From the IMG/VR virus record IMGVR_UViG_3300042514_000542, positions 124,001 to 188,000 of that record: a stretch of 64,000 bases of DNA. The stretch is one strand, 5' to 3'. The translations under genes were made by a program, and so were the position numbers. Positions 1-60,839 of the stretch are shown here, in pieces. The stretch's first letter is position 1. The number at the start of each line of letters is the position of its first letter. Under the pieces are notes generated by a model. It saw nothing but the letters and a program-made list of their open reading frames with translations. It searched no databases and had not been told where the DNA came from.

Positions 1-433
1 TTGGTGGTGGAAACGAGTAGTCATTAGTTTTCCAATCAAATATCAAACCACCAACACCATACTTATCTTTCGCACCTTTAAAAATTATAGGAGATAAAAA
101 TTTCAAAGCTGTCTCTTCCAAACTTTTTGCGTAACCCACTTCTGGTTCTTTTTTTGGAATTTCTCTACCCAATAATTCACTAATAGCTATTCCTTTCACT
201 GCCACGATACCAAATCCATCATCAGCTACTATATAATTAGCATTATGACCTATTTCACCATTTAATCCTACCCAATAATCAATAAACTTTTTAGCTTGTT
301 CTCTTGCGGTTGGACCACTATAAGTTTCAACCGTATCATCAGAATCCCCGCTATGATTTCTATAAGTAACCGTAATTTGTTCAGGTTTACTTAATTCTTG
401 ATTGTTTTCAAAAAATGTTTTAAATGTTATCAT
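1..433 (-). CDS. Hypothetical virion-internal protein with capsid-targeting-like N-terminus (partial, runs off window)
   Basis: Not in ORF track. Manual translation from ATG 433 gives MITFKTFFENNQELSKPEQ..., open to the window edge; TAAATA at 440-445, 6 nt upstream. Confidence 0.75.
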   Translation of the reverse strand, partial: MITFKTFFENNQELSKPEQITVTYRNHSGDSDDTVETYSGPTAREQAKKFIDYWVGLNGEIGHNANYIVADDGFGIVAVKGIAISELLGREIPKKEPEVGYAKSLEETALKFLSPIIFKGAKDKYGVGGLIFDWKTNDYSFPPP

Positions 434-442
434 TGCTGTTAT

Positions 443-2227
443 TTATCCAAATAGTCTCTCATATGCTCCCCACTGTTCATCCGTGAATGTTCTACTAGGA
501 TCTACGTGTGGCATACTACCACCAAGAAGATGCCAACCATCGGCTTGAAGTTGTGATATTTCATTCATTTGTTCAGTTTGTCCACCAAAAGCTATCGGTG
601 CTAGTCTCGATTGCTCAATTCTATGAACCTGTTCATTGGTATATATACTAGTAGCACTTTCGAAATACTGAATACCATAATCCAAGGGTGATATTTTGGA
701 TGGTTTACCACAGTTATCAAACTCTTCAATAGTGAACCATCTTTCACATAAATCTTTATCTAGAATCATCAATGCCCAAATCGTAGCCATGGTTCTGTCA
801 TCATGCTTACCGGAAACCGCACCCCAAGTATCATTTGGCAGTTTTACAAAGTCTTTAAAGATTTCCTCAAGGGATTGATCATTTCTAAAAACAACAACAC
901 CCCTATCGCTATAATAATAGCGAGCATTGGCACACGCATAGTATTTGGTGTTTCTGCTTGATATCATACCAAATAATTCCAAACTCTTTCTTCCAGCCAG
1001 TTTGGAACCCCAGTTAACTATCTTAGGGTATCCATAATCCATACCTAATCTATCAGCAACTTGACCACCTTGGTTATTTCTCTCAATACATACCAATGGA
1101 TTTCCCCAATGTTGTAATATCTCATATAACTTGTTGGAGAATTCTGCTACTGGAATTGTATTATCATAATATTCACCAACTTCAATGATTTCATTGAGAT
1201 CTGTAATATCTAATATCTTAATAACTGAATAGTCACCCCCAACACCCTCGGATACATCAACACCAGCGACATATAACTTATCTGGACTTGGTAATTCCCA
1301 TATCTTATACTTACCATCCATTAAAATCTCTACTGGTTCTCTAACTTCCTTTAATAAATTCTTATATAAAGTTTCATTTAAAGATGATGTTCCTGTATTA
1401 ATGAAAACACATTCATATTCCTGTTGCCACTTTTCTTCAGATGCAAGACCACTTTTAATTTTATCAGCCCATGTCTGGGTTCTACCTGGTACTTCATTCC
1501 ATAAAATTTTATCATGAACCCACCCATTCTTACCTTCCACTGCACCTGAATATAATGTATGGAAAAGATTACCCGTACCATTAGCAGTAGAACAAATGAA
1601 AACTTTTGATGTATTGGATGCTGAAACGATGGGGAATACAGATGCCCAGAATGGGTCCATTAAATGTTCTTCGATGAAAGCACACTCATCAATAACCAGT
1701 ATAGATACTGCCTGACCACGGGCAGCAGTTCCAGTTGTTGTTGAAATCTGAATTCTACTTCCATTTTCTAAATCCATTCCCGTCTTACCATAAGTTTCAG
1801 CGATTGGGGATTTTAACCAGTTTGGCATTAATTCATACGCCATTCTAATTCTACCAAAAATTTCAATAGCGGTTGCCTCTTTGTTAGCTACTAGAAGAAT
1901 ACGCTCATCGTTGAAGAATAATGCAACCCATAATAGATAGATTGTCATAAGGGTGGATTTACCGATCTGACGACTTGCTAAAAGAATAAAGAATCTATCA
2001 TTTCTCATCTTCTTCAAAATTCTCTTTTGAGCCTTATAAAGTTTAATTGTCTCTTTACCTTTACCGGGAATAAGAATGAAGAAATAATTTTCAGCGAAAT
2101 ATAAAATATCATTTTTACACTTCTCCATTTCCTTAACCATCTCAGGTGTGTATTCAAATTCAGCACCTCTAGCTGGGACATTTGGATTTCCCATGTAAAA
2201 TTTATCCTTTTTATCTCTATTTGCCAT
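443..2227 (-). CDS. 17: Terminase large subunit (T4 gp17-like)
   Basis: ASRQIGKS Walker A, ILVIDECAF Walker B, STANG, GVDVSEG and HDD nuclease motifs; start moved to ATG 2227 (MANRD), 8 nt after TAAATA. Confidence 0.95.
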   Translation of the reverse strand: MANRDKKDKFYMGNPNVPARGAEFEYTPEMVKEMEKCKNDILYFAENYFFILIPGKGKETIKLYKAQKRILKKMRNDRFFILLASRQIGKSTLMTIYLLWVALFFNDERILLVANKEATAIEIFGRIRMAYELMPNWLKSPIAETYGKTGMDLENGSRIQISTTTGTAARGQAVSILVIDECAFIEEHLMDPFWASVFPIVSASNTSKVFICSTANGTGNLFHTLYSGAVEGKNGWVHDKILWNEVPGRTQTWADKIKSGLASEEKWQQEYECVFINTGTSSLNETLYKNLLKEVREPVEILMDGKYKIWELPSPDKLYVAGVDVSEGVGGDYSVIKILDITDLNEIIEVGEYYDNTIPVAEFSNKLYEILQHWGNPLVCIERNNQGGQVADRLGMDYGYPKIVNWGSKLAGRKSLELFGMISSRNTKYYACANARYYYSDRGVVVFRNDQSLEEIFKDFVKLPNDTWGAVSGKHDDRTMATIWALMILDKDLCERWFTIEEFDNCGKPSKISPLDYGIQYFESATSIYTNEQVHRIEQSRLAPIAFGGQTEQMNEISQLQADGWHLLGGSMPHVDPSRTFTDEQWGAYERLFG

Positions 2228-2235
2228 ATCATATA

Positions 2236-2250
2236 TATTTACACTAAATA
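2236..2250. promoter_or_regulatory. Back-to-back divergent late promoters TATTTA-cac-TAAATA
   Basis: TAAATA on each strand, 8 and 7 nt before the ATGs at 2227 (-) and 2258 (+). Confidence 0.8.
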
Positions 2251-2257
2251 ACTGTAT

Positions 2258-3181
2258 ATGAGACACAACGATGCCGTAACTATTGGTGATATGTATGGGA
2301 AAATGTTAAATCCCTTGAGATATACACTAAAGGAATCAAATAAGAATGCATTTGGTAATCAACCAGAAATCGTTGGGGATGGTCCAAAAACCGATGGGTA
2401 TAATGAGGCACTTAATGATGAGATGCCCAAACCCACAAAACGTCAAGCTATTGTTAAAAAATTAGATTCTAAACTTAAAGATAGTAAATTGACTGATGCC
2501 CAAAAGAAAAAAATTAGAAAACATAGAGATGCAATGACTGCGGAAGAAGCAGAAGAGGAATTATTTGTTAAAGAAAATAGAAAAAATATTCGTGTAATGG
2601 TAAATAATAACATGAGCAAATCAGTGTTCGACAAACTATACAATAAAGTCCTTAAGGAAAACTTCGGCCAAGAAGATCAAGATATTGATGCCCTTGGGTT
2701 AGATGACTCAACACCAGACTCCGATTTTGGAGATGATTTTGGTGATGATGAATTTGGAGATGAAGGTGGAGACGAGGTTACATTCACACTTCCAAAAGAT
2801 GTAGCACAACAATTAATCGACGTTCTACAAGCATCCATTGGTGGTGAAGAAGAAGGTTTCGATGATGAAGGTGATGATCTAGATTTCGGTGACGAAGGTG
2901 GAGATGATGATCTAGATTTCGGTGGAGATGATGATGGAATGGACTTTGATGAAGATGAAGAAACTCAAGGAACCAAACCTGCTGTCGATAAAAAGAAAGC
3001 ATTCCAAGGAAAATCTAATAAGGTTTCTGGACCACCATCCCCAAAGAGTGGTAAGGCCAAGACTGATGTGACCGACGAATGTGGAACCAAAGATGGTGCG
3101 CCAAGCTTCTCAGCACTACAAGGTAAGAACAACCAAGTTCCCGGTTCAACCCTAAAGAAAGCTACTGATTACTTCCGTTAA
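2258..3181 (+). CDS. Acidic prohead core/scaffold-like protein, with probable second in-frame start at 2612
   Basis: D/E/G/F-rich low complexity (DDLDFG repeats), LKE/VKE sites, adjacent to terminase. Confidence 0.55.
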   Translation: MRHNDAVTIGDMYGKMLNPLRYTLKESNKNAFGNQPEIVGDGPKTDGYNEALNDEMPKPTKRQAIVKKLDSKLKDSKLTDAQKKKIRKHRDAMTAEEAEEELFVKENRKNIRVMVNNNMSKSVFDKLYNKVLKENFGQEDQDIDALGLDDSTPDSDFGDDFGDDEFGDEGGDEVTFTLPKDVAQQLIDVLQASIGGEEEGFDDEGDDLDFGDEGGDDDLDFGGDDDGMDFDEDEETQGTKPAVDKKKAFQGKSNKVSGPPSPKSGKAKTDVTDECGTKDGAPSFSALQGKNNQVPGSTLKKATDYFR

Positions 3182-3206
3182 TCTTAGTTAATAAATAATC
3201 AACCAA

Positions 3207-3250: not shown

Positions 3251-4063
3251 ATGATACCCTTCAAACAGTTTTTCTTAGAGAATTTCACCAACTCGATAGA
3301 TAATGAATACTTTGAAGCAATCCATAATGATGACTTATCCAAAGTTCAGAATATGGTAGATATAAAAGCCAAAAATATGGGGTATAATGTTAAAGCTTGG
3401 CATGGGACACCTATTGGAGAGTTCGACACCTTTAAATTGAGTAAATCCTTCGGATCTTTATATTTTTTTGCTAAGACCGAAGAATACGCAAAGTATTACG
3501 CCAATAGATTTAAAGGATCACCTAACCCGACAGTTATGGGAGTTTTTTTAAAAATCGAAAATCCGTTAAAGGTTGATAAATTTGAACCAGAGGGTGTTAA
3601 AACGGCATATGAGTTAAGGAAAAAAGGATACGATTCGGTAGAGACACCTAATGCATATATAGTATTTCTACCAGATCAAATAAAATCTGCAAACCCAATC
3701 ACCAAAAAGGGTGATAAAATCATCCCACTATCTAAAAGGTTTAATGTAGAATCTAATCTACTGTCTGAATATCGTCACAATCTTGCTGATGGAACACCAT
3801 CACAATCTATTCAAGCGCATAATGGTAAAGATCCCAACCGTCTAGATAAAAAGATTCTACACACTGTAGGTGATTATAAGAAAGAGAATCCTAAGATGAA
3901 TATTCCGGGTAGTGTTCTAACACCAATGGAATTAGCCGATATGGGAATCACATACGAACATGGTAAAATTTTTCAAAATGTTAAGAATAGTGGATTCGGA
4001 ATTGAGATGACCTCTATTAATGGCAAACCAATGGGTCGAGTATTCAAGTCTCGTATTAAATAA
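3251..4063 (+). CDS. Capsid-targeted protein with ADP-ribosyltransferase-like (ART-PolyVal type) domain
   Basis: MIPFKQFFLE N-terminus; AWHGT...LYFF...VFLKIENPL...KGYDSV...YIVFLPDQIKS pattern; TAAATA 5 nt before ATG 3251. Confidence 0.6.
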   Translation: MIPFKQFFLENFTNSIDNEYFEAIHNDDLSKVQNMVDIKAKNMGYNVKAWHGTPIGEFDTFKLSKSFGSLYFFAKTEEYAKYYANRFKGSPNPTVMGVFLKIENPLKVDKFEPEGVKTAYELRKKGYDSVETPNAYIVFLPDQIKSANPITKKGDKIIPLSKRFNVESNLLSEYRHNLADGTPSQSIQAHNGKDPNRLDKKILHTVGDYKKENPKMNIPGSVLTPMELADMGITYEHGKIFQNVKNSGFGIEMTSINGKPMGRVFKSRIK

Positions 4064-4068: not shown

Positions 4069-4851
4069 ATGGCTTGCCCAACAACACCACTCTCCTGCTT
4101 AGAACCTGTTAATATATTCGCAGGTGTTTATAATCCTCGTTGCGGTGGATTTGCAGACCCCTCAAACTTTCAAGCTGAAAAGGCTGTATTTGCTAGTGGA
4201 TATCAGGAATTGATTAATAACTATGGTGTGGATGTTAATTATTATGTGAATGGGTTTAATTTATCTGCAATGAACCTATTGTATGGTGAACAGCCAACAC
4301 AAGAATATGCTGGACCATTTGTTATTAAGTCTTATCTAGAATTGGAAGAAATGGTATCCTTATCACAGTTCGGTATGTCATCAGACGACGAATTGAAAGC
4401 TTATATAGCTATTAAAGATTTCACAAATTTATTCGCACTGTCTGCTAACGTTTTTTCCAATAATGGTCAAAGAGTCGAACCTAAATCTGATGATTTGATG
4501 GAAATTACAGCACTTGGTTGTGATAGACCCGGAGATAGAGGTTCTAAGATATTTCGAATAACTGAAGTATTAGATCAAAGTGTTCAGGATGGAATTAATC
4601 CAATTATGGGTCATTATATCTGGAAAATCACAGCGAAACGCTATGAGACATCTATGGAAACCAATGCGCCACAAGAATCTGGCAATGATCAGGTGTATGA
4701 TAATACATTCAGTGGTAAATTATCATCTACACTATTCCCAACACTAACTAGCGATGAGAAGGTGTATGATTTCAATATTGATACCATAAGTCAAGAGACT
4801 GTGTATGATATGGATAATACATCAAATAACATCTACGGAGACTATTATTAA
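4069..4851 (+). CDS. 14: Neck/head-closure protein (T4 gp14-like)
   Basis: ELINNYGVDVNYY, LYGE, LSQFGM..DEL, EPKSDDL, IFRITEV, YIWKITAKRYE pattern. Confidence 0.75.
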   Translation: MACPTTPLSCLEPVNIFAGVYNPRCGGFADPSNFQAEKAVFASGYQELINNYGVDVNYYVNGFNLSAMNLLYGEQPTQEYAGPFVIKSYLELEEMVSLSQFGMSSDDELKAYIAIKDFTNLFALSANVFSNNGQRVEPKSDDLMEITALGCDRPGDRGSKIFRITEVLDQSVQDGINPIMGHYIWKITAKRYETSMETNAPQESGNDQVYDNTFSGKLSSTLFPTLTSDEKVYDFNIDTISQETVYDMDNTSNNIYGDYY

Positions 4852-9198: not shown

Positions 9199-11151
9199 TT
9201 ATTTATAGTAAGAAAGAACTTCCATGGTATCAAGTTTAAAATCATCATCATCCCAGACTTTCTCGTTGATAAGTTTTTCAAACATTTTGTCGAAGGATTC
9301 CTTTACCTTAACCTTTGTCCCATCTATATCAGTTTTTATAGCCGCATATAATCGCATAAATGAATTATATCTATTACCTCCGCTAATATCCATCGGTTTA
9401 GGACTTGCAAGTACCAATATATGACGCATCTTAAATGATTCGGGTAAGCCTAATTCGTTGATAAGTTCTCTAATCAAATCTTTACTAAGTTTATTAATCC
9501 ATACATCTCTAACCTTTAATCCGGTTAATGATGGAACTATCTCCAACAGTCTCGGTGACTTAAATTTCGCAGCGACACTATCAAATAACTCATCACCCTT
9601 CATACCCTTAAACGCTAACAAATATTCACTTAAAGTATCCCAAACATCACTCTTACTTTCGTCATATTCCTTACTCTTCAATTGAATGGGTTTAGTGGAA
9701 ACCCCTTTAAATACATTAAGTATAATGGAGAATGGTAACTTCTCAAAATCTCTAACTGATGTTATATTAGCATTTCTGTCGAGTTGTAAACTCGTCACAT
9801 ATTCTCTATTATCATACGCTCTTTGGAATCTCTCAAGATATCCTATGAATGGGTTAATATTAGGATCTTCTGATGTTAAGCATAGAAGTTTATCAATTTT
9901 ATCATTGTTACTTGACGGCATACCAGACCAACTAATTTGAGAAAAATCTTTGACTGTTTTTTCTTTAGGAACTTGTAGGTCTTTGATTATACGCCTAGCT
10001 GAAGAATTAACCTCGTCTATAAATTGAATTTGTGTTTCTTTATCTACTTTTTCGTTAATCGCATTGATTTGATTTATATGGTCTTCAACATTTTTCAAAT
10101 CGTTTACAACATCTCGATATTTTTCTTCCATTACTTCAATCTCTTCAATCAAATCTAAGATTTTAGCCTTTTCTCGAACAATAGCCGAACTACTTAAATT
10201 AGCATTTGTGTGCTTATCTTCCAGATTAATCTTTCGTCTAACCGCAGATCTATATCGTTTAACTTCAGGTAATGCTTTTTCGTATTTTTTACTATTAATT
10301 TTCTTCGTTAGGGATGATATATTATCACTAATAGTGGATATATTACTATTCAAATTTTTTACTTTAGTTACATCCTTCGTTAAAAGAATTTCATGATTCA
10401 AATTCTTCAAAAGTTTTGTTTTGGTTTCAATTTCACGATACATGTCATATATATCAAAGAAATGTGTGTTTTTACTTTTCTTATTGTTATCCTCTATCGC
10501 CTTGACTCTCGCAGATATTTCAGCATATAATTCCCTAAGTTGATTGAATTTAGTTGGTGAGGAATTATACTTTTCATAATCGTTTACCCTGACACGATAA
10601 TGTCGCAGTCGAGTTTGTAATTCTGTGACCTCTTCAGCCCTTTTAACCTTCATGAAATTGAGATTGTCTAATTTCTTCTCATAATCATACGCTTCTTTGA
10701 CTTCTCTACCTCTAAAATCTTCAACGGTTCTAGATAGCCCATACGATGCCCTCTGTTTACCAAAACTTGTAGCAAGTTTGTTAAAATTTGTAATGAATGT
10801 TGGATCATTAGCCAATAACCCAAAGCTGGTTGTGAAACTTGCGTACATCATAGATCCAGCAGCAGCACCTATATCACCACGCTTTTTAATATCCAATTTA
10901 CCATCCTTTGAAATATTATATTCGTATGGATTGAATTCCCATCTAGAAATCGGAACAACCGCTTCAGGGTTATCATTTCTACCAACTGAACTCGATCCAA
11001 CCTTACCTACAAATTTACCATCTCCTGCATTCACCATCTGAGTTGGGTCTGACTCCATAGCATTATGGATTCTAGCACCACCCATATTCTTAGGGGCTGA
11101 TGGTCTAAATCCCGCTTCGGTGACTAAATTGAACAGTTTTTCGAACTTCAT
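9199..11151 (-). CDS. Large coiled-coil putative internal head protein
   Basis: MKFEKLFNLVTE N-terminus, central coiled coil, KESFDKMFEKLINE C-terminal motif; late promoter. Confidence 0.6.
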   Translation of the reverse strand: MKFEKLFNLVTEAGFRPSAPKNMGGARIHNAMESDPTQMVNAGDGKFVGKVGSSSVGRNDNPEAVVPISRWEFNPYEYNISKDGKLDIKKRGDIGAAAGSMMYASFTTSFGLLANDPTFITNFNKLATSFGKQRASYGLSRTVEDFRGREVKEAYDYEKKLDNLNFMKVKRAEEVTELQTRLRHYRVRVNDYEKYNSSPTKFNQLRELYAEISARVKAIEDNNKKSKNTHFFDIYDMYREIETKTKLLKNLNHEILLTKDVTKVKNLNSNISTISDNISSLTKKINSKKYEKALPEVKRYRSAVRRKINLEDKHTNANLSSSAIVREKAKILDLIEEIEVMEEKYRDVVNDLKNVEDHINQINAINEKVDKETQIQFIDEVNSSARRIIKDLQVPKEKTVKDFSQISWSGMPSSNNDKIDKLLCLTSEDPNINPFIGYLERFQRAYDNREYVTSLQLDRNANITSVRDFEKLPFSIILNVFKGVSTKPIQLKSKEYDESKSDVWDTLSEYLLAFKGMKGDELFDSVAAKFKSPRLLEIVPSLTGLKVRDVWINKLSKDLIRELINELGLPESFKMRHILVLASPKPMDISGGNRYNSFMRLYAAIKTDIDGTKVKVKESFDKMFEKLINEKVWDDDDFKLDTMEVLSYYK

Positions 11152-11185: not shown

Positions 11186-11743
11186 ATGGGAAAGAAATTT
11201 GACGCAATTTTTGAAGCAGTAGTATCAAGGTATCAGATTGGCGGGTATTTGCCGGGAGATATCGTGAAGTTTCGACCAAATTATAAATCAACACCAACAT
11301 ATAAAGCTATGCATTCTGAAATGCAGAGAGAGCTTGACGAATTGGTAAAAAGTGGACTTAATATCAAAGTTACTCAAGTCGGTTCAAAGACCTACAACCA
11401 ATCTTCCGCAAATGATCACAAAACCGCCGATAATGTAGTTATTACAATTGCTGGGGATCATGGTGGTGGTCGCCATTTCGGATCTATTACAGTTTCCCCA
11501 GAAATGATTGATATTGTTGGTGCTGGAGATCCCACACCACCTGTTGCATCTCAATTCTATAGAGACGATGAGAAGTATCTCAATGGTAAGACCGAAGAAT
11601 GGAAGGCAGACCAACAAAACATTACTAGAGTCACTGATAAAGGAAATGGTAAGAACACTCCAACCGATCTTAAATTAGCGGGAGAAGGAACTCGCCTTAA
11701 GAGGGATAATGATAATATGGCGATGCTCTATGAAGGACTTTGA
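11186..11743 (+). CDS. Hypothetical virion protein
   Basis: MGKKFDAIFE start after TAAATA-N5. Confidence 0.65.
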   Translation: MGKKFDAIFEAVVSRYQIGGYLPGDIVKFRPNYKSTPTYKAMHSEMQRELDELVKSGLNIKVTQVGSKTYNQSSANDHKTADNVVITIAGDHGGGRHFGSITVSPEMIDIVGAGDPTPPVASQFYRDDEKYLNGKTEEWKADQQNITRVTDKGNGKNTPTDLKLAGEGTRLKRDNDNMAMLYEGL

Positions 11744-12857
11744 TAAAAATAATATAGCGAAACTATATTTAGAAAATGTCAATCCAAACATCTCAGAAGA
11801 GGATCAGAAGAAACTTGCTGATTTTTTCGTTCAATTAGTTGTAAAAATTGAACAAGGTGATCAGGAAGCTCAACAATTACTAAACCTACCACCTGATCAA
11901 CTATTACAACATATTCAAAACTCTCAACAAGTCCAACAGGAAGCATTTGAAAATATTAGAAGTAGGATTGGTGGAGCATTTAAAGGAACTGGGCCAGCAC
12001 AGCAAAGATATGGAATTCTGCTCAAGAATGTTCAAAAGAAGTTGTGGGAGTTGGGACAAGATATCCAATCGACACAAGATCAGAATAATATAGCGTCATA
12101 TCAAGATCTTATATCCCAAGTTCAAGCAGTTGAACCAACAATGGTTCCCACACCGGGATCTCTTCAACAATTGGGATATAATATTGGGAAGGGTGTTGGG
12201 GCTGTAGGTAAGATAGCGGGAACAGTGGCAGGTGCAGGATTAATAGCCAGCACATTATCCACGGTGGGTCTTCCCATTGCTGCGGTTGGTGCTGTTGTTG
12301 GTGGTGGTATCAGCACACTCAAAAACCTATCAAACACCAACATGACTCCGGGTGAAAAGATTAAAAAAGCTTTGATAAGCGCAGGACTCGGTGCTGTTAC
12401 GGCATATGCTCTTAGTGAATTGAGAGATGCTATGTCCGACACATCAATGGATGCGGCAAGAGCAGAAGCGGATAGAATAGACCTAAATGGGGAAACGCTT
12501 AGAAGTTCTGAAGAATTAATAGATCAAGGCGTTGAAGGTGTCCCAGAAACGGGAGTTGCTCAAGGCGTTGAAGGTGTCCCAGAAACGGGAGTTGCTCAAA
12601 ACGCATCCGGTGGGATAGATTCTACCGCAAAAGTACGTATTGCGGCTCCAGATCTTCCGAATTCCGAACGAATTGCATTCACTAGAGGTAAAATACAAGC
12701 ATTGCGACAATTGACCGCACATTTAGGGACTGATACAATACGGGGTGTCACATATGATCAAGTTATTGGTGCAGATGGTAATATGTATGTTACCGCTAAA
12801 TGGTCACAGGCAATGTCGGATACTGCTGCTAAAATTTCTAGACAGATGGGAAATTAA
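11730..12857 (+). CDS. Putative ejected/membrane-active head protein with Gly/Ala-rich hydrophobic hairpin
   Basis: Start MKDFDKNNIAKLYLE at 11730; GKGVGAVGKIAGTVAGAGLIA...AVGAVVGGGI segment. Confidence 0.55.
   Translation: MKDFDKNNIAKLYLENVNPNISEEDQKKLADFFVQLVVKIEQGDQEAQQLLNLPPDQLLQHIQNSQQVQQEAFENIRSRIGGAFKGTGPAQQRYGILLKNVQKKLWELGQDIQSTQDQNNIASYQDLISQVQAVEPTMVPTPGSLQQLGYNIGKGVGAVGKIAGTVAGAGLIASTLSTVGLPIAAVGAVVGGGISTLKNLSNTNMTPGEKIKKALISAGLGAVTAYALSELRDAMSDTSMDAARAEADRIDLNGETLRSSEELIDQGVEGVPETGVAQGVEGVPETGVAQNASGGIDSTAKVRIAAPDLPNSERIAFTRGKIQALRQLTAHLGTDTIRGVTYDQVIGADGNMYVTAKWSQAMSDTAAKISRQMGN
12524..12599 (+). repeat. Perfect 36-bp tandem duplication (QGVEGVPETGVA x2)
   Basis: caaggcgttgaaggtgtcccagaaacgggagttgct at 12525-12560 and 12561-12596. 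Confidence 0.95.
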
Positions 12858-12860
12858 ACA

Positions 12861-13163
12861 ATGAATAAACAAGATCAAATAAATATAGCGCAACTCTACG
12901 AAGAAGGGTTATGGGATAGGATGAAAGCATCGGCTTCCGGTGTATCTGCTGGAGTCAAAGGGTTCTTGGGTGGTAATGGTTATGCTAAATCGGCACAATC
13001 GGCAAAAAAATCCAGCTTAATGAGGGGTAAACTTTCATCAATATTGCAAGATATTCAAAAATTTGAAACTGACATGGGAAGATATAAAAATGATCCGTCT
13101 GCATCGACATTCTCACAAAAAACATCTCAAATTAAACAAATAATTAACAATTTCAATAAATAA
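12861..13163 (+). CDS. Small putative head protein
   Basis: MNKQDQINIAQLYEE-GLWDRMKA. Confidence 0.65.
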   Translation: MNKQDQINIAQLYEEGLWDRMKASASGVSAGVKGFLGGNGYAKSAQSAKKSSLMRGKLSSILQDIQKFETDMGRYKNDPSASTFSQKTSQIKQIINNFNK

Positions 13164-13167
13164 TATT

Positions 13168-13821
13168 ATGTCAGCATACAATCGCAGCGATATGAAACTT
13201 CTTGAAGAAGCCTATAACCTTAGACTCCTTAAAGAACAAGCCCCACACATGACAATCAATGATGTAAAGAACCGTTTACATCTGATGAATGAATCAGAAC
13301 TGGAATATATTAACACTGTTAACGAAAGAATTCTTAATGAATTCTGGGGTGGACTTAAAAGTGTCGGTCAAGGAATTAAAAATGCTGGTGGTGCGGCTTT
13401 ACAAGCTGGTAAGAATGCTGGGAATGCTGCTCTACAGGCTGGAAAGGCTGCTGCTGGGAATGTAGCCAATGCTGCTTCTGCGGCTGGACAGGGCGCACTT
13501 GCCGCTGGCAAACAAGTCGTAGATAATGCTAAGGACATGTATAGTGCTGGTAATGTCGCATCACAATCCGATGAAGCAATTACTAAGGCTCAGACATCAA
13601 TGCAACAACTTATCGACCTTGTAACACAAGCACAAGCAAATGGTCTTATTAAGGCTCAAGGTGATGTTACAGACATGACATTAGCTGATATCATCGATGA
13701 ACTTACAACTGCACAACAATCAGCACAAACATTCAAGCAAGGGGCGCAAACTAAAGGATTTACTGGTGGTGCTGGACAAGCAGCTAAAGCTGCATATCAA
13801 GGAGCGAGACAACCAATTTAA
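13168..13821 (+). CDS. Ala/Gly/Gln-rich putative head protein
   Basis: KNAGxAALQAG repeats, ILNE-FWGGLK motif, TAAATA-N5-ATG. Confidence 0.65.
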   Translation: MSAYNRSDMKLLEEAYNLRLLKEQAPHMTINDVKNRLHLMNESELEYINTVNERILNEFWGGLKSVGQGIKNAGGAALQAGKNAGNAALQAGKAAAGNVANAASAAGQGALAAGKQVVDNAKDMYSAGNVASQSDEAITKAQTSMQQLIDLVTQAQANGLIKAQGDVTDMTLADIIDELTTAQQSAQTFKQGAQTKGFTGGAGQAAKAAYQGARQPI

Positions 13822-29913: not shown

Positions 29914-30354
29914 ATGAGTAAATTCGCAAAAAACTTCCTTGAAGTATTAAAAGAAGCAGATCTTGATAGAGATCTTGAGAGACAAGCTATGGAAGGTTCT
30001 CTTGATGACGGTATCGATCCTTCTGAATTCGATACCGATATGGAGATGTCCCCTGAAGAAGCACAAGCCACTGATGAAGTTGCCGATGCTATGTCGAAAC
30101 GTAACCAACAAATCATTTCAGAACTCCAAGGTTGGATTGATCAAGTCGAAGAGTTCCTTAGCTTTCTTAACAGTGAAGATCCTAATAGTGTCCAATCACG
30201 TTTGGCTGCTGCTGAACCAGATACCGTTATGGATAAGATGAAACAGTCTCAACAAACTAAAATTAGTCGTGTTGCATCTGACTTAGCGAGTTTACATCAA
30301 AACTTCCTTGGATTCATGGCTCAAACTTCCAACGCAAGATTTAAATATGTGTGA
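29914..30354 (+). CDS. Acidic putative prohead/internal protein
   Basis: MSKFAKNFLEVLKE; late promoter. Confidence 0.7.
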   Translation: MSKFAKNFLEVLKEADLDRDLERQAMEGSLDDGIDPSEFDTDMEMSPEEAQATDEVADAMSKRNQQIISELQGWIDQVEEFLSFLNSEDPNSVQSRLAAAEPDTVMDKMKQSQQTKISRVASDLASLHQNFLGFMAQTSNARFKYV

Positions 30355-36410: not shown

Positions 36411-36679
36411 TTCTTATTACTATTCAAAAATTTTGTGACGTATTTGCTTTTTGCAATCGTCGGATCGAAATCTAAGAACACCCTAACAAGCTCATAGTCA
36501 GTGTCAAGGTTTAGAATCTCCTTTAAAATTGTTTTTAACTTTTCACTTGAGAGTGTTTGAATGAAAACGTTCTGAATAGAAAGCTTTTTACCTTTCAAGT
36601 TCATGACGAATGTGCAAAAACATAAGAAAAGGTGAGTTGATTCCTCATCCTCGATATTTTGTGAAGGATCAGTTATCAT
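36407..36679 (-). CDS. Hypothetical protein
   Basis: Likely start MITDPSQ at 36679, overlapping the HEG end. Confidence 0.6.
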   Translation of the reverse strand: MITDPSQNIEDEESTHLFLCFCTFVMNLKGKKLSIQNVFIQTLSSEKLKTILKEILNLDTDYELVRVFLDFDPTIAKSKYVTKFLNSNKK

Positions 36680-40904: not shown

Positions 40905-42896
40905 ATGACTAAATATGGATTTGACTATTTTACCAAACGTGCAGAACTCTTAACAGAGATGGCTAGAACGACTACCCGCTATAATGGGTTGAATGTTGGA
41001 GGTGAATATGATTATGATTTCGTTGCTCTTAGAGCGAAAGTGTTGAATGCTATTAAAAGTGGAATGTCCCCGCATAATGCGTCAGATCCGTTGGTAGATG
41101 AAGACGGGAAAACTGCAACAGGTGTGGTTGATGGATCTCAATATAGATCATTGATATACATGTTTTCTAAAGTGTATAATACGATATTAGATAATGAAGA
41201 GTTTGATATCGATGCCGATGTTGAATTTGAAAATGCTAAGGGTTTACTATCATCGGACATATCCAAACTGCCAGTTAGCGAAGATGTTCACGCGATTATA
41301 TATGAAATACAAAATCAAATCAAGGAAAATGGTATTAAATTAGATAAACCTACATTAGATAATGTAACTAGAGAAATTATATCAAAATACGTTCCAAATA
41401 TTGCGGAAATTTTAAAGGCTCATGATAGTGGAGATAAGAATTCGGGAATAGAAGAGCTTCCTGTAATTCCCGTTGATATTTATCGAGATCCCTCAAGGTT
41501 CTTATCATCTTTATTTGAAATCCGTAATTCTAAAACCACTAGTGGTAGAAAAGTAGTCGATGACCCCAATAAAAAACCCGGAAAACAACCCACTCTTATA
41601 GAAGAATATACTAAAAAAATGCAATCTTTGGCAAGGAAAATATATAAACAATATGTCGAAAACCCCAAAAAAGCACCAAGCGGTCCAGAAATTTTTGAAG
41701 CTGCCACTATCGTCCTCATAAAAAAGCATCCGGAATTAATTTTCGATAAATCATTTGTAAATTCCGTATTAGATCCTGTAAATATTGCCACTTTTATCAA
41801 TAAAGGGGAGTCAGGTGAGGGGATTGTCGTACTGGATCATGAAACATCAAAACTGGCAGCAAGAAATATTGGTGAAATGTATGGTATAAACGCTAAATCT
41901 TATAATGAGTTGATGTCGAAGTCTAGAAAGGTCAGAACACAATTAAGTTATCTATCTCGCGCAGATGCAAAGAGAAAAGTGAAAACTTCCCCGACTGTAG
42001 AAAAAAAATCAAGTCCCGATAAATTAGATAATTTACATACCCAAAACGTAGATAACATTCTTACTATATTACTAGCTTTAAAAGAAGACAAGATCGACTT
42101 GGATGAACAGATTGAAATTAAGAGTGAATTATTTAAGGACCCTTACGATGTGATCCTAACAATACATGACGAAACAGACGTTCCAATAAAGTGGATAACA
42201 TCAATGATGAAGCTCAAGGGTACACAAGTTATCGACAGATTATACGATGTTTTTCTTACATTAGAAAATGTAGGAATTGATATTGACACTTTTAATGAAA
42301 ATATGGAGGAGTTAAAATCAAAAAAACCAGAATTGGTGGGGTTTATCGATATTTTCACTAAAGACGTTTCACTAAAAATAAAAGCAGATACTCCAAAGTC
42401 GAATGTCCTTAGTTTTCCGGGATTCGCCCAAGAACATATTGAAAAAGTTCTCGATACTCCAGAAAAGAAAAACATCTTCTCCACTTATTATAATTATATC
42501 TATGTTAAAGATTTGAAGCGAGCAGCCGCAGAAGTTCAGCAAAAATTAGACGTTGATGCAGGTAAAGAAGTTGTGGGAAAACCAGTTACCCTATATGCTA
42601 TGCGTCAAGCTGAAAAGAATTTCCAAAAGAGTAGTGGTAAGTTTGGTAATAGGGGTGAAAATATGGAACGTGAGGCAGAACTAGCTAAACGTGAGAAGGA
42701 CAAAGAATTTAAAAAGGATCAAAATAAACTAAGCAAGGGGATACAAGATATAATCGGTAAACCTCTACGCAACGAATCATATGTTATGAATTATATGACA
42801 GAACAATTCCAAAAAGATAGGTTCAAAACCAAAGGTGAATTTAAAGATCGTGGATACAAAAAACCAACCAATTACTGGCAAGGTAGAAACCTATGA
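40905..42896 (+). CDS. Large putative internal head protein
   Basis: Late promoter, LLTE-MAR site; inserted antisense in the replication block. Confidence 0.65.
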   Translation: MTKYGFDYFTKRAELLTEMARTTTRYNGLNVGGEYDYDFVALRAKVLNAIKSGMSPHNASDPLVDEDGKTATGVVDGSQYRSLIYMFSKVYNTILDNEEFDIDADVEFENAKGLLSSDISKLPVSEDVHAIIYEIQNQIKENGIKLDKPTLDNVTREIISKYVPNIAEILKAHDSGDKNSGIEELPVIPVDIYRDPSRFLSSLFEIRNSKTTSGRKVVDDPNKKPGKQPTLIEEYTKKMQSLARKIYKQYVENPKKAPSGPEIFEAATIVLIKKHPELIFDKSFVNSVLDPVNIATFINKGESGEGIVVLDHETSKLAARNIGEMYGINAKSYNELMSKSRKVRTQLSYLSRADAKRKVKTSPTVEKKSSPDKLDNLHTQNVDNILTILLALKEDKIDLDEQIEIKSELFKDPYDVILTIHDETDVPIKWITSMMKLKGTQVIDRLYDVFLTLENVGIDIDTFNENMEELKSKKPELVGFIDIFTKDVSLKIKADTPKSNVLSFPGFAQEHIEKVLDTPEKKNIFSTYYNYIYVKDLKRAAAEVQQKLDVDAGKEVVGKPVTLYAMRQAEKNFQKSSGKFGNRGENMEREAELAKREKDKEFKKDQNKLSKGIQDIIGKPLRNESYVMNYMTEQFQKDRFKTKGEFKDRGYKKPTNYWQGRNL

Positions 42897-43660
42897 ACGA
42901 ATTCATAAATTTATATAAATCTCTAATGTTGGAGATGGCTAGACCCTCATCACTTGGGCCAAAAATGTTGGGTGATGAATTATTCAAAAAATTCAACACA
43001 TTATTAGCTGAAGTTAATGATAGGTTCAAGTATGGCGTTCACAAATATCCAGAACTAGTAGACTTTAAAGGGGAAGAAGCATATGGTCTACACGATAAAG
43101 TTTTACAAGAGAGGAAACTTAGATATTTCTTTTTTTGTTTAAACAAAAACTATAAAAATTTAGATTATAAAGAAGAAATTACCATGGATAATGAGAGAGC
43201 TAGATCCATAGGCGAAATGACACAATACTGTAAACAAAAAGGAATACATTATAGTCTCGGATCAATTAGAATGACCACTTCTGCTATTTTTGAAAAAATA
43301 AAAGACGATGAGAAGTGGTTTTTGTCAAAAAACTTCCAAAAGATATTATTAGATCCTAAACTTATGGCTAGTTATATGAATGCTTCGAGGGAGACATTTA
43401 ACCAATCATCTATAAATGCCGCAGCAAAACGTGAGAAAGAGGGTGGAATGGGTATACGAGATCTAGATAAATTCAGGGCAGAATACCGTGATGTAGATAA
43501 AGCATTAAGTTACAAGGAGAGGGGTACGGGTCTTAAACAAAAAGCCGCAGAAAAAAGAGAAAAGATTGAAACTCTTCGTAAGAAAAAAGAGATGGCTAAT
43601 GCGAAGCGTAAACAGACATGGGCTAATAAGAAACTAAACAAAAAAACCCAAGGAATTTAA
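42893..43660 (+). CDS. Putative internal head protein, partial paralog of preceding gene
   Basis: LMLE-MAR; shared F...LDP...A.(F/Y).N and LSY..R segments. Confidence 0.65.
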   Translation: MNEFINLYKSLMLEMARPSSLGPKMLGDELFKKFNTLLAEVNDRFKYGVHKYPELVDFKGEEAYGLHDKVLQERKLRYFFFCLNKNYKNLDYKEEITMDNERARSIGEMTQYCKQKGIHYSLGSIRMTTSAIFEKIKDDEKWFLSKNFQKILLDPKLMASYMNASRETFNQSSINAAAKREKEGGMGIRDLDKFRAEYRDVDKALSYKERGTGLKQKAAEKREKIETLRKKKEMANAKRKQTWANKKLNKKTQGI

Positions 43661-48719: not shown

Positions 48720-48747
48720 AGAATATCACCACCAAGCAGGATGTCAA
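48720..48747 (-). promoter_or_regulatory. Sigma70-type early promoter of the DNA polymerase gene
   Basis: TTGACA-N16-TATTCT, 9 nt before ATG. Confidence 0.8.
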
Positions 48748-48989
48748 CCAACCTGATCCTGAATATAGCTTAAATGTGCTGTGTCTCCATTAACTCTACA
48801 GTTTAATTTCATACTACCTCTAATTCCTCGATCAACTTCGGCTACATTTTCACCAATAATTAATTTATACCCACGGTGAGTCGCTATATGTTCCCCATTC
48901 GGTAATACCCCATTAACTATTTTAACTTCCCACTCACCACTATACATTTCAAGTAATAGGTTTTGAATATTCGCAACATCCTTTTTCAT
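48744..48989 (-). CDS. Small late protein
   Basis: TAAATA-N5-ATG; LLLE site. Confidence 0.65.
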   Translation of the reverse strand: MKKDVANIQNLLLEMYSGEWEVKIVNGVLPNGEHIATHRGYKLIIGENVAEVDRGIRGSMKLNCRVNGDTAHLSYIQDQVG

Positions 48990-53702: not shown

Positions 53703-53967
53703 GTTTCCAATTTCGATCTAAAAATTTAGACATCTCAGCTAATGCAGGTTTGAATAAATTATTATATGAATAATCCGAGTAGTTAGCGCATTTATATTCG
53801 AATACATCTTCAGAATATCCATTAAGATGGCATCGGATAATCCACTTACCATCTTCATATCTACCATCTATTTTATCAACTCTCCTATGTTTCATATTAG
53901 TCATAACATCCGTCCTCTGAATCATGTTCCAACATCGGTCTAACATAAACCGACCCTTGTGATGCAT
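53695..53967 (-). CDS. Hypothetical protein (true start probably near 53900)
   Basis: Fills the gap between gp55 and gp47. Confidence 0.5.
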   Translation of the reverse strand: MHHKGRFMLDRCWNMIQRTDVMTNMKHRRVDKIDGRYEDGKWIIRCHLNGYSEDVFEYKCANYSDYSYNNLFKPALAEMSKFLDRNWKHD

Positions 53968-54343
53968 CGCTCATTTCATTTTCATAAACCATCTGTTTAT
54001 ATTCTTCCAGACCTTCGTGTTGTCTATTCTCTTTCTTGATACGATTGGAAAATGCATTCCATGCAATCTGATTGAAGTATGAGAATGGATTGAATTCTGA
54101 TTCAATCTTAAATTTCTTATCTTCCAATGCTGAATACATCTTCAAAATGGCATCACCCACCATCTCATCTTTCCATGTGTAATTGATAAACCTATAATTA
54201 TAACTAAGACCTTCAGCAATCTTAACTATGTTCAAGGCTAGTTCATTCGACATTACATCATCCTCGTAGTATTTCTCCAATTGCTGGCGAAATAGTTTTG
54301 ATGACACATAATACTTCTCTTTAACGTCTTTATTTGTTATCAT
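53897..54343 (-). CDS. 55: Late transcription sigma factor (gp55)
   Basis: KIAEGLS...FINYTWKDEMVGDA, NPFSYFNQIAWNAF..RIKKE. Confidence 0.93.
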   Translation of the reverse strand: MITNKDVKEKYYVSSKLFRQQLEKYYEDDVMSNELALNIVKIAEGLSYNYRFINYTWKDEMVGDAILKMYSALEDKKFKIESEFNPFSYFNQIAWNAFSNRIKKENRQHEGLEEYKQMVYENEMSDASQGSVYVRPMLEHDSEDGCYD

Positions 54344-56932: not shown

Positions 56933-56960
56933 AGTATAAATACATATATGAGATTGTCAA
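56933..56960. promoter_or_regulatory. Overlapping divergent early (-) and late (+) promoters
   Basis: TTGACA-N16-TATACT on - overlaps TATAAATA (56935-56942) on +. Confidence 0.75.
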
Positions 56961-57196
56961 TAGAAGAACAAACAAAACTTGCAAATATTTACGAAACTAA
57001 GGTGTTAGTTGAAATGGATGTAGCGGGAATTATGGGTGGTGCGCCAACTTCTGGTGGTAGTCTTGAGAATGTTGATGGTTATGCCGCTGGGGATAATAGG
57101 ATTCCTAAAATCTTAGGTGGTATTCAGACTCGTAGGGGTCTTGCGAAGAAAAATGGTAAGAAAAAGAGGAAAGTTGGCACGAAATCTGCGTCCTAA
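56948..57196 (+). CDS. Small late protein with basic tail
   Basis: Start MRLSIEE after TATAAATA-N5. Confidence 0.7.
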   Translation: MRLSIEEQTKLANIYETKVLVEMDVAGIMGGAPTSGGSLENVDGYAAGDNRIPKILGGIQTRRGLAKKNGKKKRKVGTKSAS

Positions 57197-58373: not shown

Positions 58374-58382
58374 ATAATCAAT

Positions 58383-58823
58383 ATGAGTAAATTCCTTAAT
58401 CTTATAGAACAGTTCGATCCACAAAACACTGAAGATCCCAAGTGGAAACTGATTGATTATCTTAAATCCAAAGGTGTTCATGTAGAACTTGTAAGGGATA
58501 CCGATATGGTTCATATCCATACAGATGGTGATGTCATTGCGGTTAATGTTTCCATTCCAGAAGAAGAGGCTGAAAGTATTAATGCTGGAACTGGAACCTA
58601 TGAAGTAGATCAAGAGGTTGAAAATCTTGGAAATAAGGCTAATAGCGGATTAAGAGGATTGGCAGCAAAAGCTTGGGGAACTCCAGCACAAAAAGCTAAA
58701 ACAGCGGTGAAAGAGCGTCAACAAGTTGCTGGACAAGCTGTAGATGCATATAAAAAAGGAACCGAAAGAATCCAAAAAGGATTACAAGCGGTTAAAAAAT
58801 CAGCAATCGGCAGAACATACTAA
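58383..58823 (+). CDS. Putative head/internal protein
   Basis: MSKFLNLIE; TAAATA-N6. Confidence 0.65.
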   Translation: MSKFLNLIEQFDPQNTEDPKWKLIDYLKSKGVHVELVRDTDMVHIHTDGDVIAVNVSIPEEEAESINAGTGTYEVDQEVENLGNKANSGLRGLAAKAWGTPAQKAKTAVKERQQVAGQAVDAYKKGTERIQKGLQAVKKSAIGRTY

Positions 58824-59197
58824 TGAAATCTAAAACTTTACAACTAATCAATCGTTATCACCGTCTTATTAGAGAGCAAGGTGAAGACCCATCTATGGAA
58901 CAAGACCCTAATGCTATGGAACAACCACAAGATGCTGTTGATCCAAATGCTGGAGGTGCTGGAGAAGAGGAATTACCATTAACGTCTCAAGGTGAAGATA
59001 AGTATATTGCTGATCTTATTGATGCAGCATTATTCGAGCCATCAGCAGAAGACGCTAGAACACTTTTAAATCTCCAAAACGTAATGCAAATGAAGCGTTA
59101 CAAAAATGCTAGAGAAGAAGTTCTACCATTAGTATTATCTCTTATTAGTTCTGAAACCCAAGGTGGGGATCTTAAAAAGAGCTTGAATTCAATTTAA
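58823..59197 (+). CDS. Putative head/internal protein
   Basis: LIRE-QGED site; TAATG coupling. Confidence 0.65.
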   Translation: MKSKTLQLINRYHRLIREQGEDPSMEQDPNAMEQPQDAVDPNAGGAGEEELPLTSQGEDKYIADLIDAALFEPSAEDARTLLNLQNVMQMKRYKNAREEVLPLVLSLISSETQGGDLKKSLNSI

Positions 59198-59222
59198 CCT
59201 AAACATTTTAATAAATAATACT

Positions 59223-59621
59223 ATGAAGTTCCGCGATAGAGAAAATGCTTTAATTTGGGAGAGATATGTTGATCCATACACCCAATTAGAAATGGATGGA
59301 GATGAATCATTGAATGATCCTACAGTTGAAGACCCTATGATGGGTGAAGAGGATCTTGAGGTTCTGGCATTTGAACCAGAAATGGATATTGAAACCGAAG
59401 AACATGAAGCGTGTAATGAAGTTATATATTCTGATATCAAAAAACTTGCCGAATATTCAAAAAGAATTCTTGGAATTTGTCAAGAAAAAGAAATGGAACC
59501 TTGGATGCAAGCAAAACTTATAAAAGCTTCTGATTATGTTTCTGAAGTATGGCATAGACTTGATTCGGAAGCAGATTTTGCAAATACTGGATTTGAACAG
59601 TCCGACAACATTAGTTTCTAA
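59223..59621 (+). CDS. Acidic putative head protein
   Basis: RENALIWE; EPWMQAKLIKASDY motif; TAAATA-N5. Confidence 0.65.
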   Translation: MKFRDRENALIWERYVDPYTQLEMDGDESLNDPTVEDPMMGEEDLEVLAFEPEMDIETEEHEACNEVIYSDIKKLAEYSKRILGICQEKEMEPWMQAKLIKASDYVSEVWHRLDSEADFANTGFEQSDNISF

Positions 59622-59622
59622 T

Positions 59623-59898
59623 ATGAGTAAGTTTTTGACGAAGAGCGAGGAATATCAATTGATGTGGGAAAAAACCCAAATCAAAGAGTCCAATGTTCAA
59701 CCAATAAATGTATTATTGGAATCAAAACATATGTTAGAAAACATAGTAAAAACTATTAATATCAACTCTGGTTCGATGAAACCTATAAAAGAGAATAAAA
59801 ATCAACCATCGGTTGATGATGTGGTGAAAGTATATGATACATTACTCAAAATAACCAAACAGATGGGTGTTGATACAACACTTCAACCAGTGATTTAA
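59623..59898 (+). CDS. Putative head/internal protein
   Basis: Start MSKFLTK 1 nt after the upstream stop; IKE and LLE sites. Confidence 0.6.
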   Translation: MSKFLTKSEEYQLMWEKTQIKESNVQPINVLLESKHMLENIVKTININSGSMKPIKENKNQPSVDDVVKVYDTLLKITKQMGVDTTLQPVI

Positions 59899-59901
59899 TG
59901 A

Positions 59902-60342
59902 ATGAGAAGTTTCAAGCAATATTTTGTAGAGAAAACCGTTTTAGGTTTGGAAGAAACTATCTACGTTGATGGTGTTGGACAACTACGTGCGAAATTAGAC
60001 ACGGGAAATGGAGCGTTTAATGTTCTACATGGACAGAAAATTCAAATAGATGGTGATATGGTTAGGTTCACCACTGAAAATGGTGTGGTATTAGAGAAAC
60101 CTATTTCAGATCATATAACAATTAACTTGGGTGCTGGTAATACCGAAGATCGTCCAGTGGTATTATTAAATATAAAAATGGGTGATAAGATTTTCAAGGA
60201 TATCCCATTCTCAATCGGAAACAGATCACAAAATACCCATAAAGTTTTAATTGGTAAGAGCTTCATACAAAATGAATTAGATGCATTAATTGATGTGGGT
60301 CTTGTAGATGTAGCTAAAAGAAATATAGAAGTTAATATATGA
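59902..60342 (+). CDS. Retropepsin-like (RimK-associated type) aspartic peptidase with capsid-targeting-like N-terminus
   Basis: AKLDTG, EDRPVV, FSIGNRS, VLIG; MRSFKQYFVE. Confidence 0.8.
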   Translation: MRSFKQYFVEKTVLGLEETIYVDGVGQLRAKLDTGNGAFNVLHGQKIQIDGDMVRFTTENGVVLEKPISDHITINLGAGNTEDRPVVLLNIKMGDKIFKDIPFSIGNRSQNTHKVLIGKSFIQNELDALIDVGLVDVAKRNIEVNI

Positions 60343-60839
60343 AAAAGTTTACTCAAAAAGAATTGTTGAATGAGGGGTTTTGGGACAGTTTTCCAGCTAG
60401 AGTTCTTAAGGGTGCTGCTGTTGTTGGTAAATTTGCGACTAAGACACTCGCACCTGAAATATACAACCCTATCTCCAGTGTGGTGTCGGGAATTAAAGAT
60501 CTAAATCAACAATTGATTAAAGCTACCACACCAGAGGCTTCATATATAATAAATAAATTGGCGAATCAAGGATATTCAATAGTTGGTGATATTGGTAAGA
60601 TTAAAATGAGACAAGGGGATGATAAACAATTGTATAAAGTATCAGTTGTAATAAGACAAAATTTTATCAGTTCTGGAGAACCCAATCCTCAAAAAATATT
60701 CTTAGTGGACAAAGATGGTAATATAGTAAGAGATTTAAGTGCTAAAAACGCCGCAAAGGGTGGGAAAAAACCACAAAAACAAAGAGTTTCACCAGTTGTA
60801 ACAAATCCACAAACCAAAAAAGTTCCACCGAAACCTTGA
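60339..60839 (+). CDS. Putative head/internal protein
   Basis: LLNE-GFWDS motif. Confidence 0.65.
   Translation: MKKFTQKELLNEGFWDSFPARVLKGAAVVGKFATKTLAPEIYNPISSVVSGIKDLNQQLIKATTPEASYIINKLANQGYSIVGDIGKIKMRQGDDKQLYKVSVVIRQNFISSGEPNPQKIFLVDKDGNIVRDLSAKNAAKGGKKPQKQRVSPVVTNPQTKKVPPKP

Follow-up and report, generated by a model that had tools for sequence, protein, structure and literature searches.

Candidate T4-type capsid-targeting tags on an enlarged set of late proteins in an uncultured lake phage

We analysed 64,000 nucleotides of viral DNA from a lake-water metagenome assembly (bases 124001-188000 of the 206,590-bp, 35% G+C contig IMGVR_UViG_3300042514_000542; hereafter the window), together with the rest of the contig and its relatives, and studied a short peptide found at the N-termini of late proteins encoded there. 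The peptide is an amphipathic tag of 9-17 residues with the consensus M-[I/K/R]-[T/S/P]-F-[K/S]-x-[F/Y]-[F/Y]-x(0-3)-E. It is probably a genuine capsid-targeting sequence (CTS) of the kind known from phage T4, belonging to a new uncultured lineage in which the tag system has been expanded and the cargo is partly enzymatic. Genome-wide, 12-13 proteins carry a strict form of the tag and about 14 others a probable one. We infer that the tagged proteins are packaged, cleaved and injected. The mechanism itself is already known from T4; what is new is the lineage and the enlarged cargo list.

The source genome is that of an uncultured, distant T4-like myovirus, below called the lake phage. Its DNA polymerase and major capsid protein (MCP) are about 30% identical to their counterparts in T4-like cyanophages. 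No close relative was found in a collection of cultured phages, and megablast of 20 kb of the window against the phage collection returned no match. The clade is widespread in lakes: IMG/VR contains 366 contigs with related capsid proteins, the best 80 of them at 72-97% identity, and one cargo protein has 482 homologues. Several contigs of the clade are complete genomes of about 200 kb with terminal repeats. Three complete related genomes of this size, G001, G002 and G003, were used for comparison.

A Met-anchored motif and its likeness to the T4 tags

The initial annotation of the window had defined the family by a hydrophobic residue two positions ahead of a glutamate (hydrophobic-x-E, or Phi-x-E) within the first ~20 residues. 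As a definition this is too loose to be useful. The pattern occurs in 28 of 53 late N-termini (53%) and 11 of 42 early ones (26%), against 39% of random internal windows of 24 residues, and its frequency in late genes falls to the background, about 42%, once the genes with the core tag are taken out. A tighter motif, M-x-x-[FY]-x-x-Phi-Phi-x0-3-E, rises well above chance. It is present in 10 of the 53 late-promoter genes and in none of the 42 early ones, against a background of 1.6% in internal windows (binomial p ~1e-8), and 8 of the 15 matches to the core regular expression among the 65,214 residues encoded genome-wide lie directly on a start methionine. The tag also has a register-shifted form, Phi-x-x-Phi-Phi-x0-2-E. 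The generalised heptad is found in 19 of 53 late N-termini, 3 of 42 early ones and 12% of internal windows, an excess that is repeated in G001, G002 and G003 (28-33% versus 10%). Scanning the same three genomes with a scoring matrix trained on the lake-phage genome alone recovers 6-7 Met-anchored tags in each, enriched 38- to 83-fold over other positions.

All 17 peptides on which the annotation had drawn could be located in the window where expected, 15 of them at N-termini. About 12 are supported by the statistics, and 5 are inseparable from chance: LLTE-MAR, LLLE-MY, LIRE-QG, MKKFTQKELLNE and, less clearly, LMLE-MAR. We sorted the carriers into strict (tier 1), probable (tier 2) and chance-level fringe (tier 3) members. 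The annotation's description of the carriers as otherwise unrelated holds, in that no two of 32 candidates, trimmed of their first 20 residues and compared all against all by BLASTP, matched at E<0.01. Peptides of the form I-A-x-L-Y-x-E were considered as a second tag class and rejected; their Phi-x-x-Phi-Phi-x-E heptad is that of the other tags, moved 5-8 residues inwards, and some members of the group are mere orthologues. We likewise rejected a Sec, Tat or lipoprotein signal peptide: the tags interrupt their aromatic residues with Lys, Glu or Gln and end in Glu, and have no unbroken hydrophobic core.

The proposed analogy with the T4 CTS is borne out by the match of the tags to the N-termini of IPI, IPII and IPIII, internal proteins of T4, with agreement at positions 4, 7, 8 and 10. 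In the T4 record, ipII and ipIII start with MKTYQEFIAE and ipI with MKTFKEFTSTTTPVSTITE (MKTFKEF...). Across 116 orthologues (65-100% identity) of the tier 1 protein encoded from position 59902 of the window, F/Y4, Y/F7, F/Y8 and E10 show no variation, in contrast to positions 2, 3 and 9. According to a review of T4 head assembly, CTS residues 4 and 7 mainly determine targeting and residues 8 and 10 processing (PMC9026906), so that the fixed residues correspond to the T4 ones position by position. Capsid targeting by the T4 CTS has been demonstrated with fusions (PMC9026906, PMC3012670), and T4 is able to package a beta-galactosidase fusion (PMC9026906). Other T4 substrates of the gp21 protease bear Phi-Phi-x-E within their first ten residues (gp21 itself, ...LLIE; gp22, ...LIAE; gp24, ...LLRE), and the lake phage's own protease (MALKLKLISE) and scaffold-like protein (MKKNLKSLFSE) begin in the same way.

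With the same tools, strict CTS-like tags number 10-12 in the lake-phage genome, 4 in T4, about 5 in KVP40, 1-2 in Caulobacter phage Cr30 (including MKTFKQFFNE), 1-2 in HTVC008M and 1 in S-SM2. These counts indicate that the tag is common to the whole superfamily and several-fold expanded in the lake clade; the set, which had been called unusually large, is so in relative terms. A literature search for CTS tags beyond the T-even group found no report in the library searched. The tag is nearly identical in T4, Cr30 and the lake clade despite capsid identity of about 30%, which suggests an ancient origin for the site at which the tags dock on the scaffolding core. Tags may also be interchangeable between phages and, if so, would be useful for protein-delivery engineering in laboratory phages.

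One T4 protein outside the known set deserves mention. Gp61.1, a hypothetical protein of 54 amino acids encoded beside the primase gene (NC_000866, 18966-19130, minus strand), starts with MKTFKEFIKE. This is a near-perfect CTS, and gp61.1 may be an unrecognised packaged peptide of T4.

The lake phage encodes the head machinery that such tags would use. Its gp21-type prohead protease (Peptidase_S77, E 3.4e-29), encoded at 4837-5505 of the genome, is 34% identical to T4 gp21, its gp23 is recognised at E 4.5e-84, and the scaffold-like protein, of 294 amino acids, is encoded between the two. The large terminase, baseplate wedge proteins, clamp loader, helicases, gp32 and UvsX are also encoded. In the capsid protein a conserved site, ...WC-L-E-E|AG, precedes the mature N-arm and is kept in the relatives. 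The HMMER alignment to T4 gp23 is unreliable near the maturation site, and the predicted cut after L-E-E56 is based on the motif and its conservation instead. Residues 26-56 of a small late protein (56948-57196) align with residues 61-94 of the MCP at 53% identity (BLASTP against the MCP). The MCP segment copied is the one immediately behind the predicted maturation cut, and the small protein resembles a capsid-protein N-arm encoded on its own.

Expression of the carriers is predicted to be of the late type. Throughout the genome a TAAATA motif resembling the T4 late promoter core stands ahead of an ATG, at a distance of exactly 5 nt in 47 cases and 6 nt in 15. It does so on 8 of 13 strict carriers, none of which has the early motif described below, and some strict carriers lacking a TAAATA of their own are located downstream in late operons.

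The TAAATA-ATG genes have no Shine-Dalgarno sequence (window examples are the genes starting at 433(-), 2612(+), 3251(+), 11151(-), 11186(+) and 58383(+)). Given this absence and the spacing of 5-6 nt, the late mRNAs appear to be leaderless, starting at or beside the A of the ATG. Genes of the early region have a different signal, a motif of 22 nt, TTAATTAAAACCGAAnTAtAAT, of which there are about 60 copies, mostly on the minus strand at 49-110 kb of the genome; an example in the window lies upstream of 28967(-). In 41 of 58 cases it precedes a small gene of the early region, at a distance of exactly 6 nt from the ATG, and no conserved -35 element was seen at the usual distance from its sites. 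The relatives have repeated early-type motifs of their own, TTTAAAAACTAGAATAC in G003 (41 copies) and ATTAAACACTAA... in G001 and G002, and no motif of T4 or S-SM2 is comparably repeated (8 copies at most). Within the clade, promoter and recognition factor may co-vary.

Cargo behind the tag and motifs at module junctions

Strict carriers in the window are four in number, starting at 433(-), 3251(+), 58383(+) and 59902(+). Eight more lie outside it, six of them clustered in an island at 37.5-47.5 kb of the genome. The six tagged genes of the island are distributed over both strands and encode proteins of 212, 500, 178, 1054, 357 and 592 amino acids. Only the 212-aa protein and the 500-aa one, a CCA-adding/poly(A) polymerase with an HD domain, have homologues in G001-G003. 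This suggests that the island is a variable cargo locus, resembling the T-even internal-protein locus.

That the tag is modular, as had been proposed, is supported by the variety of proteins behind it: the CCA-adding enzyme, a protein with an ART-PolyVal ADP-ribosyltransferase (ART) domain, a PF05618 protein, an M90-like peptidase, a DUF5661 protein and the 1054-aa protein, which contains a KOW motif. Orthologues preserve the pattern of the tag and not its letters. The CCA-adding enzyme begins with MITFSKFFKE, MIPFKKFFFE or MIRFHKLYRQLMRE, and the M90-like protein with MPFKLFYE, MESFSTFFE, MNFDQLTE or MNFYSLLE. The tag of the ART carrier (MIPFKQFFLE, residues 44-148 forming the domain; PF18760, E 1.4e-12) is replaced in relatives by MKLFKEFFNDYILNE and MKSFKAFFYE, on a partly different protein. 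Behind this tag the relatives share only the C-terminal ~100 residues, indicating that cargo has been swapped behind a constant address. In the 146-aa protein encoded from 59902, the PF05618 (retropepsin-like 'Zn_protease') domain starts at residue 13, directly behind the tag (E 2.9e-11). The 243-aa protein encoded at 433(-), whose gene has TAAATA 6 nt ahead of its ATG, belongs to no Pfam family and gave no homologue by tblastn against the phage collection. Pfam and PHROGs assign no family to most tier 2 and tier 3 carriers. A protein-atlas look-up gave no usable match for the 650-aa and 1054-aa cargo proteins, and for the 592-aa protein a weak lead to PcfJ-like viral proteins.

Tag-like motifs also occur inside proteins. 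The similar C-terminal helices that the annotation had pointed out are present: KESFDKMFEKLINE in the 650-aa open reading frame (ORF) at 9303-9262, 34 residues ahead of the stop, and DNDNMAMLYE in the protein encoded from 11186, at 11705-11734, 12 residues ahead of the stop. The first of these marks a module junction, which points to an internal cleavage site: in relatives KESFDKMFEKLINE precedes a C-terminal module of ~80 residues that is a separate tagged gene in the lake phage, at genome position 28652(-). Conversely, a 354-aa protein of the lake phage (genome position 19425) corresponds to a tagged protein of ~65 residues plus a second tagged protein of the relatives, and keeps an internal ...FKESYLSE|MAL at the fusion junction. 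Because fusion and fission occur at tag-like motifs, the internal copies seem to serve as cleavage points.

A further locus in the window may be read in two ways by the phage itself. The tier 2 gene at 2612 is nested in frame inside a 307-aa ORF (2258-3181) that has a separate late motif at 2258. Relatives keep the motif at 2612 together with the embedded TAAATA, as Leu-Asn-Lys codons, within the longer ORF. The locus likely gives two products, of 307 and 189 amino acids.

Weighing the capsid-targeting reading

If the tags are indeed CTSs, the aromatic face formed by positions 4, 7 and 8 would dock the protein on the scaffolding core during prohead assembly, and the gp21-type prohead protease would then cut after the Glu of Phi-x-E. 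The freed cargo would remain in the head with the DNA and be injected at the next infection. At module junctions, copies of the motif would give the protease sites for splitting fused cargo.

The best-surviving alternative gives the tag another role at the protein level, as an inhibitory propeptide, an address to some other part of the virion or cell, or a degradation signal. A zymogen logic is plausible for cargoes that are potentially harmful enzymes (the ADP-ribosyltransferase, the peptidases). The tag, however, is too short to block an active site and too detached from the fold to do so; AlphaFold2 models residues 4-12 of the PF05618 protein as a low-confidence helix standing apart from a confident beta domain, which begins at residue 16. 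It is also carried by proteins with no enzyme domain, and is the same kind of tag as that of T4, whose capsid targeting rests on the fusion experiments cited above. We consider such a role unlikely, and less economical than the T4 precedent.

It is very unlikely that the first ~30 nt are selected as an RNA-level signal for ribosome loading on leaderless-looking mRNAs, even though the spacing of TAAATA from the ATG is fixed at 5-6 nt in 62 cases, the early motif keeps its own spacing of 6 nt, and the tag codons are AT-rich. The same promoter geometry is found without the tag in 43 of 53 late genes. Both Phe codons are used in the tags (TTT 51, TTC 18), which indicates that it is the protein that is under selection, and F and Y replace one another at fixed positions. 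T4 uses the same peptide, and the motif also occurs within proteins at module junctions.

Chance, by which an AT-rich phage rich in F, K, I and E codons would produce amphipathic N-termini, accounts for the background frequencies of hydrophobic-x-E given above and for matches of loose expressions to T4 non-virion enzymes such as thymidylate synthase (MKQYQDLIKDIFE), but as a general explanation it is extremely improbable: it is refuted for the core set by the ~80-fold enrichment of the strict motif at start methionines, its absence from all 42 early genes, the four fixed positions in 116 orthologues and its recurrence in independent genomes, and remains the default for the tier 3 fringe.

Several observations weigh against capsid targeting. 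The genome is a metagenome assembly known from its sequence alone, and enzymes of 500-1054 residues exceed the T4 internal proteins in size. Five of the 13 strict tags (genome positions 19425, 39660, 40090, 44277 and 183902) lack a late motif at 5-6 nt. Some matches to the regular expressions are clearly not cargo, for example the clamp loader (MRYDNLWIE), from which it follows that the tier 2 and tier 3 lists hold false positives. Several tags of the relatives (MKTFEKFFKGVNSDIE...) have no nearby Phi-x-E, so that cleavage may not accompany every tag. We list here also a complex prediction for the protease and the PF05618 cargo, which gave no answer (score 0.00) and is evidence neither way.

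The capsid-targeting reading can be set beside four known systems. In the T4 CTS system, as here, a tag of ~10 residues whose position 4 is aromatic, positions 7 and 8 hydrophobic and position ~10 Glu stands on unrelated carriers that are expressed late, or in the lake phage predicted to be, a gp21-type protease is encoded, and the cargo set differs between relatives. The lake phage differs in the number of carriers (3-4 in T4), in a cargo that includes large enzymes of 270-1054 amino acids where that of T4 consists of small basic proteins, in the dispersal of its carriers over the genome with one six-gene island, in its tag-like motifs at internal module junctions and in a capsid protein that shares only ~30% identity with those of T4-like phages in culture.

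T4 Alt, a packaged enzyme, is likewise an ART encoded among virion genes, with a late-type gene, a short N-terminal propeptide and a presumed action on host proteins right after injection. The lake enzyme belongs to the ART-PolyVal (Tox-ART-HYD2) clade and not to Alt/VIP2 (PMC5512222), and bears a tag of the internal-protein type where Alt has a propeptide of 7 residues. ART-PolyVal and metallopeptidase-like domains are also found in polyvalent proteins, which are predicted to be injected with the DNA and combine 2-15 disparate effector domains per polypeptide (Iyer et al. 2017, PMC5512222). The presence of an ART-PolyVal cargo fits the idea of an injected effector. We rejected classification of the lake cargo as polyvalent proteins: the 270-aa ART carrier is single-domain, and the others have one domain or the domain set of one enzyme. 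The lake domains are separate, each on a protein with its own address tag, with no giant polypeptide. Finally, in the giant phages phiKZ, 201phi2-1 and SPN3US many head and ejection proteins are cut after Glu by a gp21-related protease with, reportedly, extremely few cleavage determinants besides Glu (PMC9026906), whereas the lake phage has a hydrophobic residue two positions ahead of the Glu, as in T4, and a defined N-terminal tag.

A broader proposal, which we put forward tentatively and consider possible though doubtful, is that in the lake clade the CTS tag has become a general means of delivering proteins. As many as about 27 proteins from each genome would enter the head and be injected, some as fused modules cut at internal tag-like sites. 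Among them would be a tRNA CCA-adding/repair enzyme, an ADP-ribosyltransferase and two peptidases, and at least one protein might redirect host transcription to the 22-nt early promoter, which has 60 copies and differs between relatives. Were the CCA-adding enzyme packaged, this would suggest that damage done to tRNA by host defence is countered at entry. Should the tag act as its T4 counterpart does, the proteins that uncultured phages inject could be read from sequence, and a search for the tag would list candidate effectors of anti-defence and host takeover that act before phage gene expression.

Tagged and other genes of the window

Table 1. Candidate tagged genes and related late-phase genes (window coordinates; tiers as defined in the text)
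Position	Strand	Product	Tag and remarks
1..433 (genome 123702-124433)	-	Tier 1 cargo, 243 aa	MITFKTFFE at 433-407; 3' end beyond window edge
2612..3181	+	Tier 2, 189 aa	Starts MSKSVFDKLYNKVLKE, tag 2612-2659; own late-type promoter
3251..4063	+	Tier 1 cargo, 270 aa	MIPFKQFFLE at 3251-3280; late motif
9199..11151	-	Tier 2 cargo, 650 aa	MKFEKLFNLVTE at 11151-11116, then conserved AGFRPSAPKNMGGAR
11186..11743	+	Tier 2, 185 aa	MGKKFDAIFE at 11186-11215
11730..12857	+	Tier 2, 375 aa	Shifted heptad tag MKDFDKNNIAKLYLE at 11730-11774; G002 orthologue MKSIENNNIFQLYVE
12861..13163	+	Tier 2, 100 aa	MNKQDQINIAQLYEE at 12861-12905; G002 orthologue MKNDDQLKIAELYEE
13168..13821	+	Tier 2 to 3, 217 aa	MSAYNRSDMKLLEE then AYNLRLLKE; late motif; orthologues ...QVMLTE AYTLQLLKE
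29914..30354	+	Tier 2, 146 aa, acidic	MSKFAKNFLEVLKE at 29914-29955; orthologues in 3/3 relatives
40905..43660	+	Tier 3, two overlapping late genes, 663 and 255 aa	...AELLTE|MAR; MNEFINLYKSLMLE|MAR
48744..48989	-	Tier 3, 81 aa	N-terminus MKKDVANIQNLLLE|MY; matches the generalised heptad alone
53897..54343	-	gp55-like late sigma factor	phrog_234, E 1.7e-26; machinery, not cargo
56948..57196	+	Tier 2, capsid-arm-like protein, 82 aa	N-terminus MRLSIEEQTKLANIYE, own N-terminal Phi-x-E sites; late
58383..58823	+	Tier 1, 146 aa	MSKFLNLIE at 58383-58409; orthologues MSRFLSILE, MSKFLSILE, MSKFLEILE
58823..59197	+	Tier 3, 124 aa, acidic	...RYHRLIRE|QG; orthologues ...LKIIKE|QGE
59902..60342	+	Tier 1, 146 aa	MRSFKQYFVE at 59902-59931
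60339..60839	+	Tier 3, 166 aa	MKKFTQKELLNE|GFW; orthologues ...RELLAE|GFW, ...KDLLSE|GFW

The candidate tagged genes of the window are collected in Table 1. Orthologues of the 650-aa ORF begin with MKFDKLVQIVTE and MKFEKLVKILSE, and those of the 185-aa protein with MGLKFDKIFE, MGKKFDAIYE and MGIKFNQIYDSILE. The latter gene opens, and the 217-aa gene closes, a conserved late operon of four genes (11186-13821). The tier 3 gene at 58823 forms one small late operon with both neighbouring tier 1 genes. The N-terminus of the tier 3 protein encoded at 60339, MKKFTQKELLNE, is similar to that of T4 gp24, MAKINELLRE. The overlapping pair at 40905-43660 sits amid replication genes and has a late motif at 40905; G001 reads MSEFDTLYRELMIE|MARP at this place, profile searches found no family for the pair, and its motifs are statistically inseparable from chance.

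Three ORFs on the minus strand (35012-35770, 36669-37517 and 54340-55077) have by eye the N-terminal pattern ...AG[IV]YKL[TV]C...YIGKS and resemble GIY-YIG homing endonucleases. A late-type TAAATA precedes the ATG of each, and all three lie inserted amid replication genes. A late ORF of 115 amino acids (27552-27899, plus strand) begins with a run of 12 Ser residues followed by Pro/Thr/Val repeats and a Cys-rich tail, and ends a tail-fibre-like block. Finally, the window holds sugar-nucleotide-type ORFs (14732-16371, minus strand; N-terminus MKGIILAGGKGSRLYPLT..., by eye), a glycosyltransferase ORF (49207-50415, minus strand; phrog_7162) and, in a row at its right end, more ORFs for possible transferases (61919-64000, plus strand). 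Together these could point to glycosylation of DNA or virion proteins.

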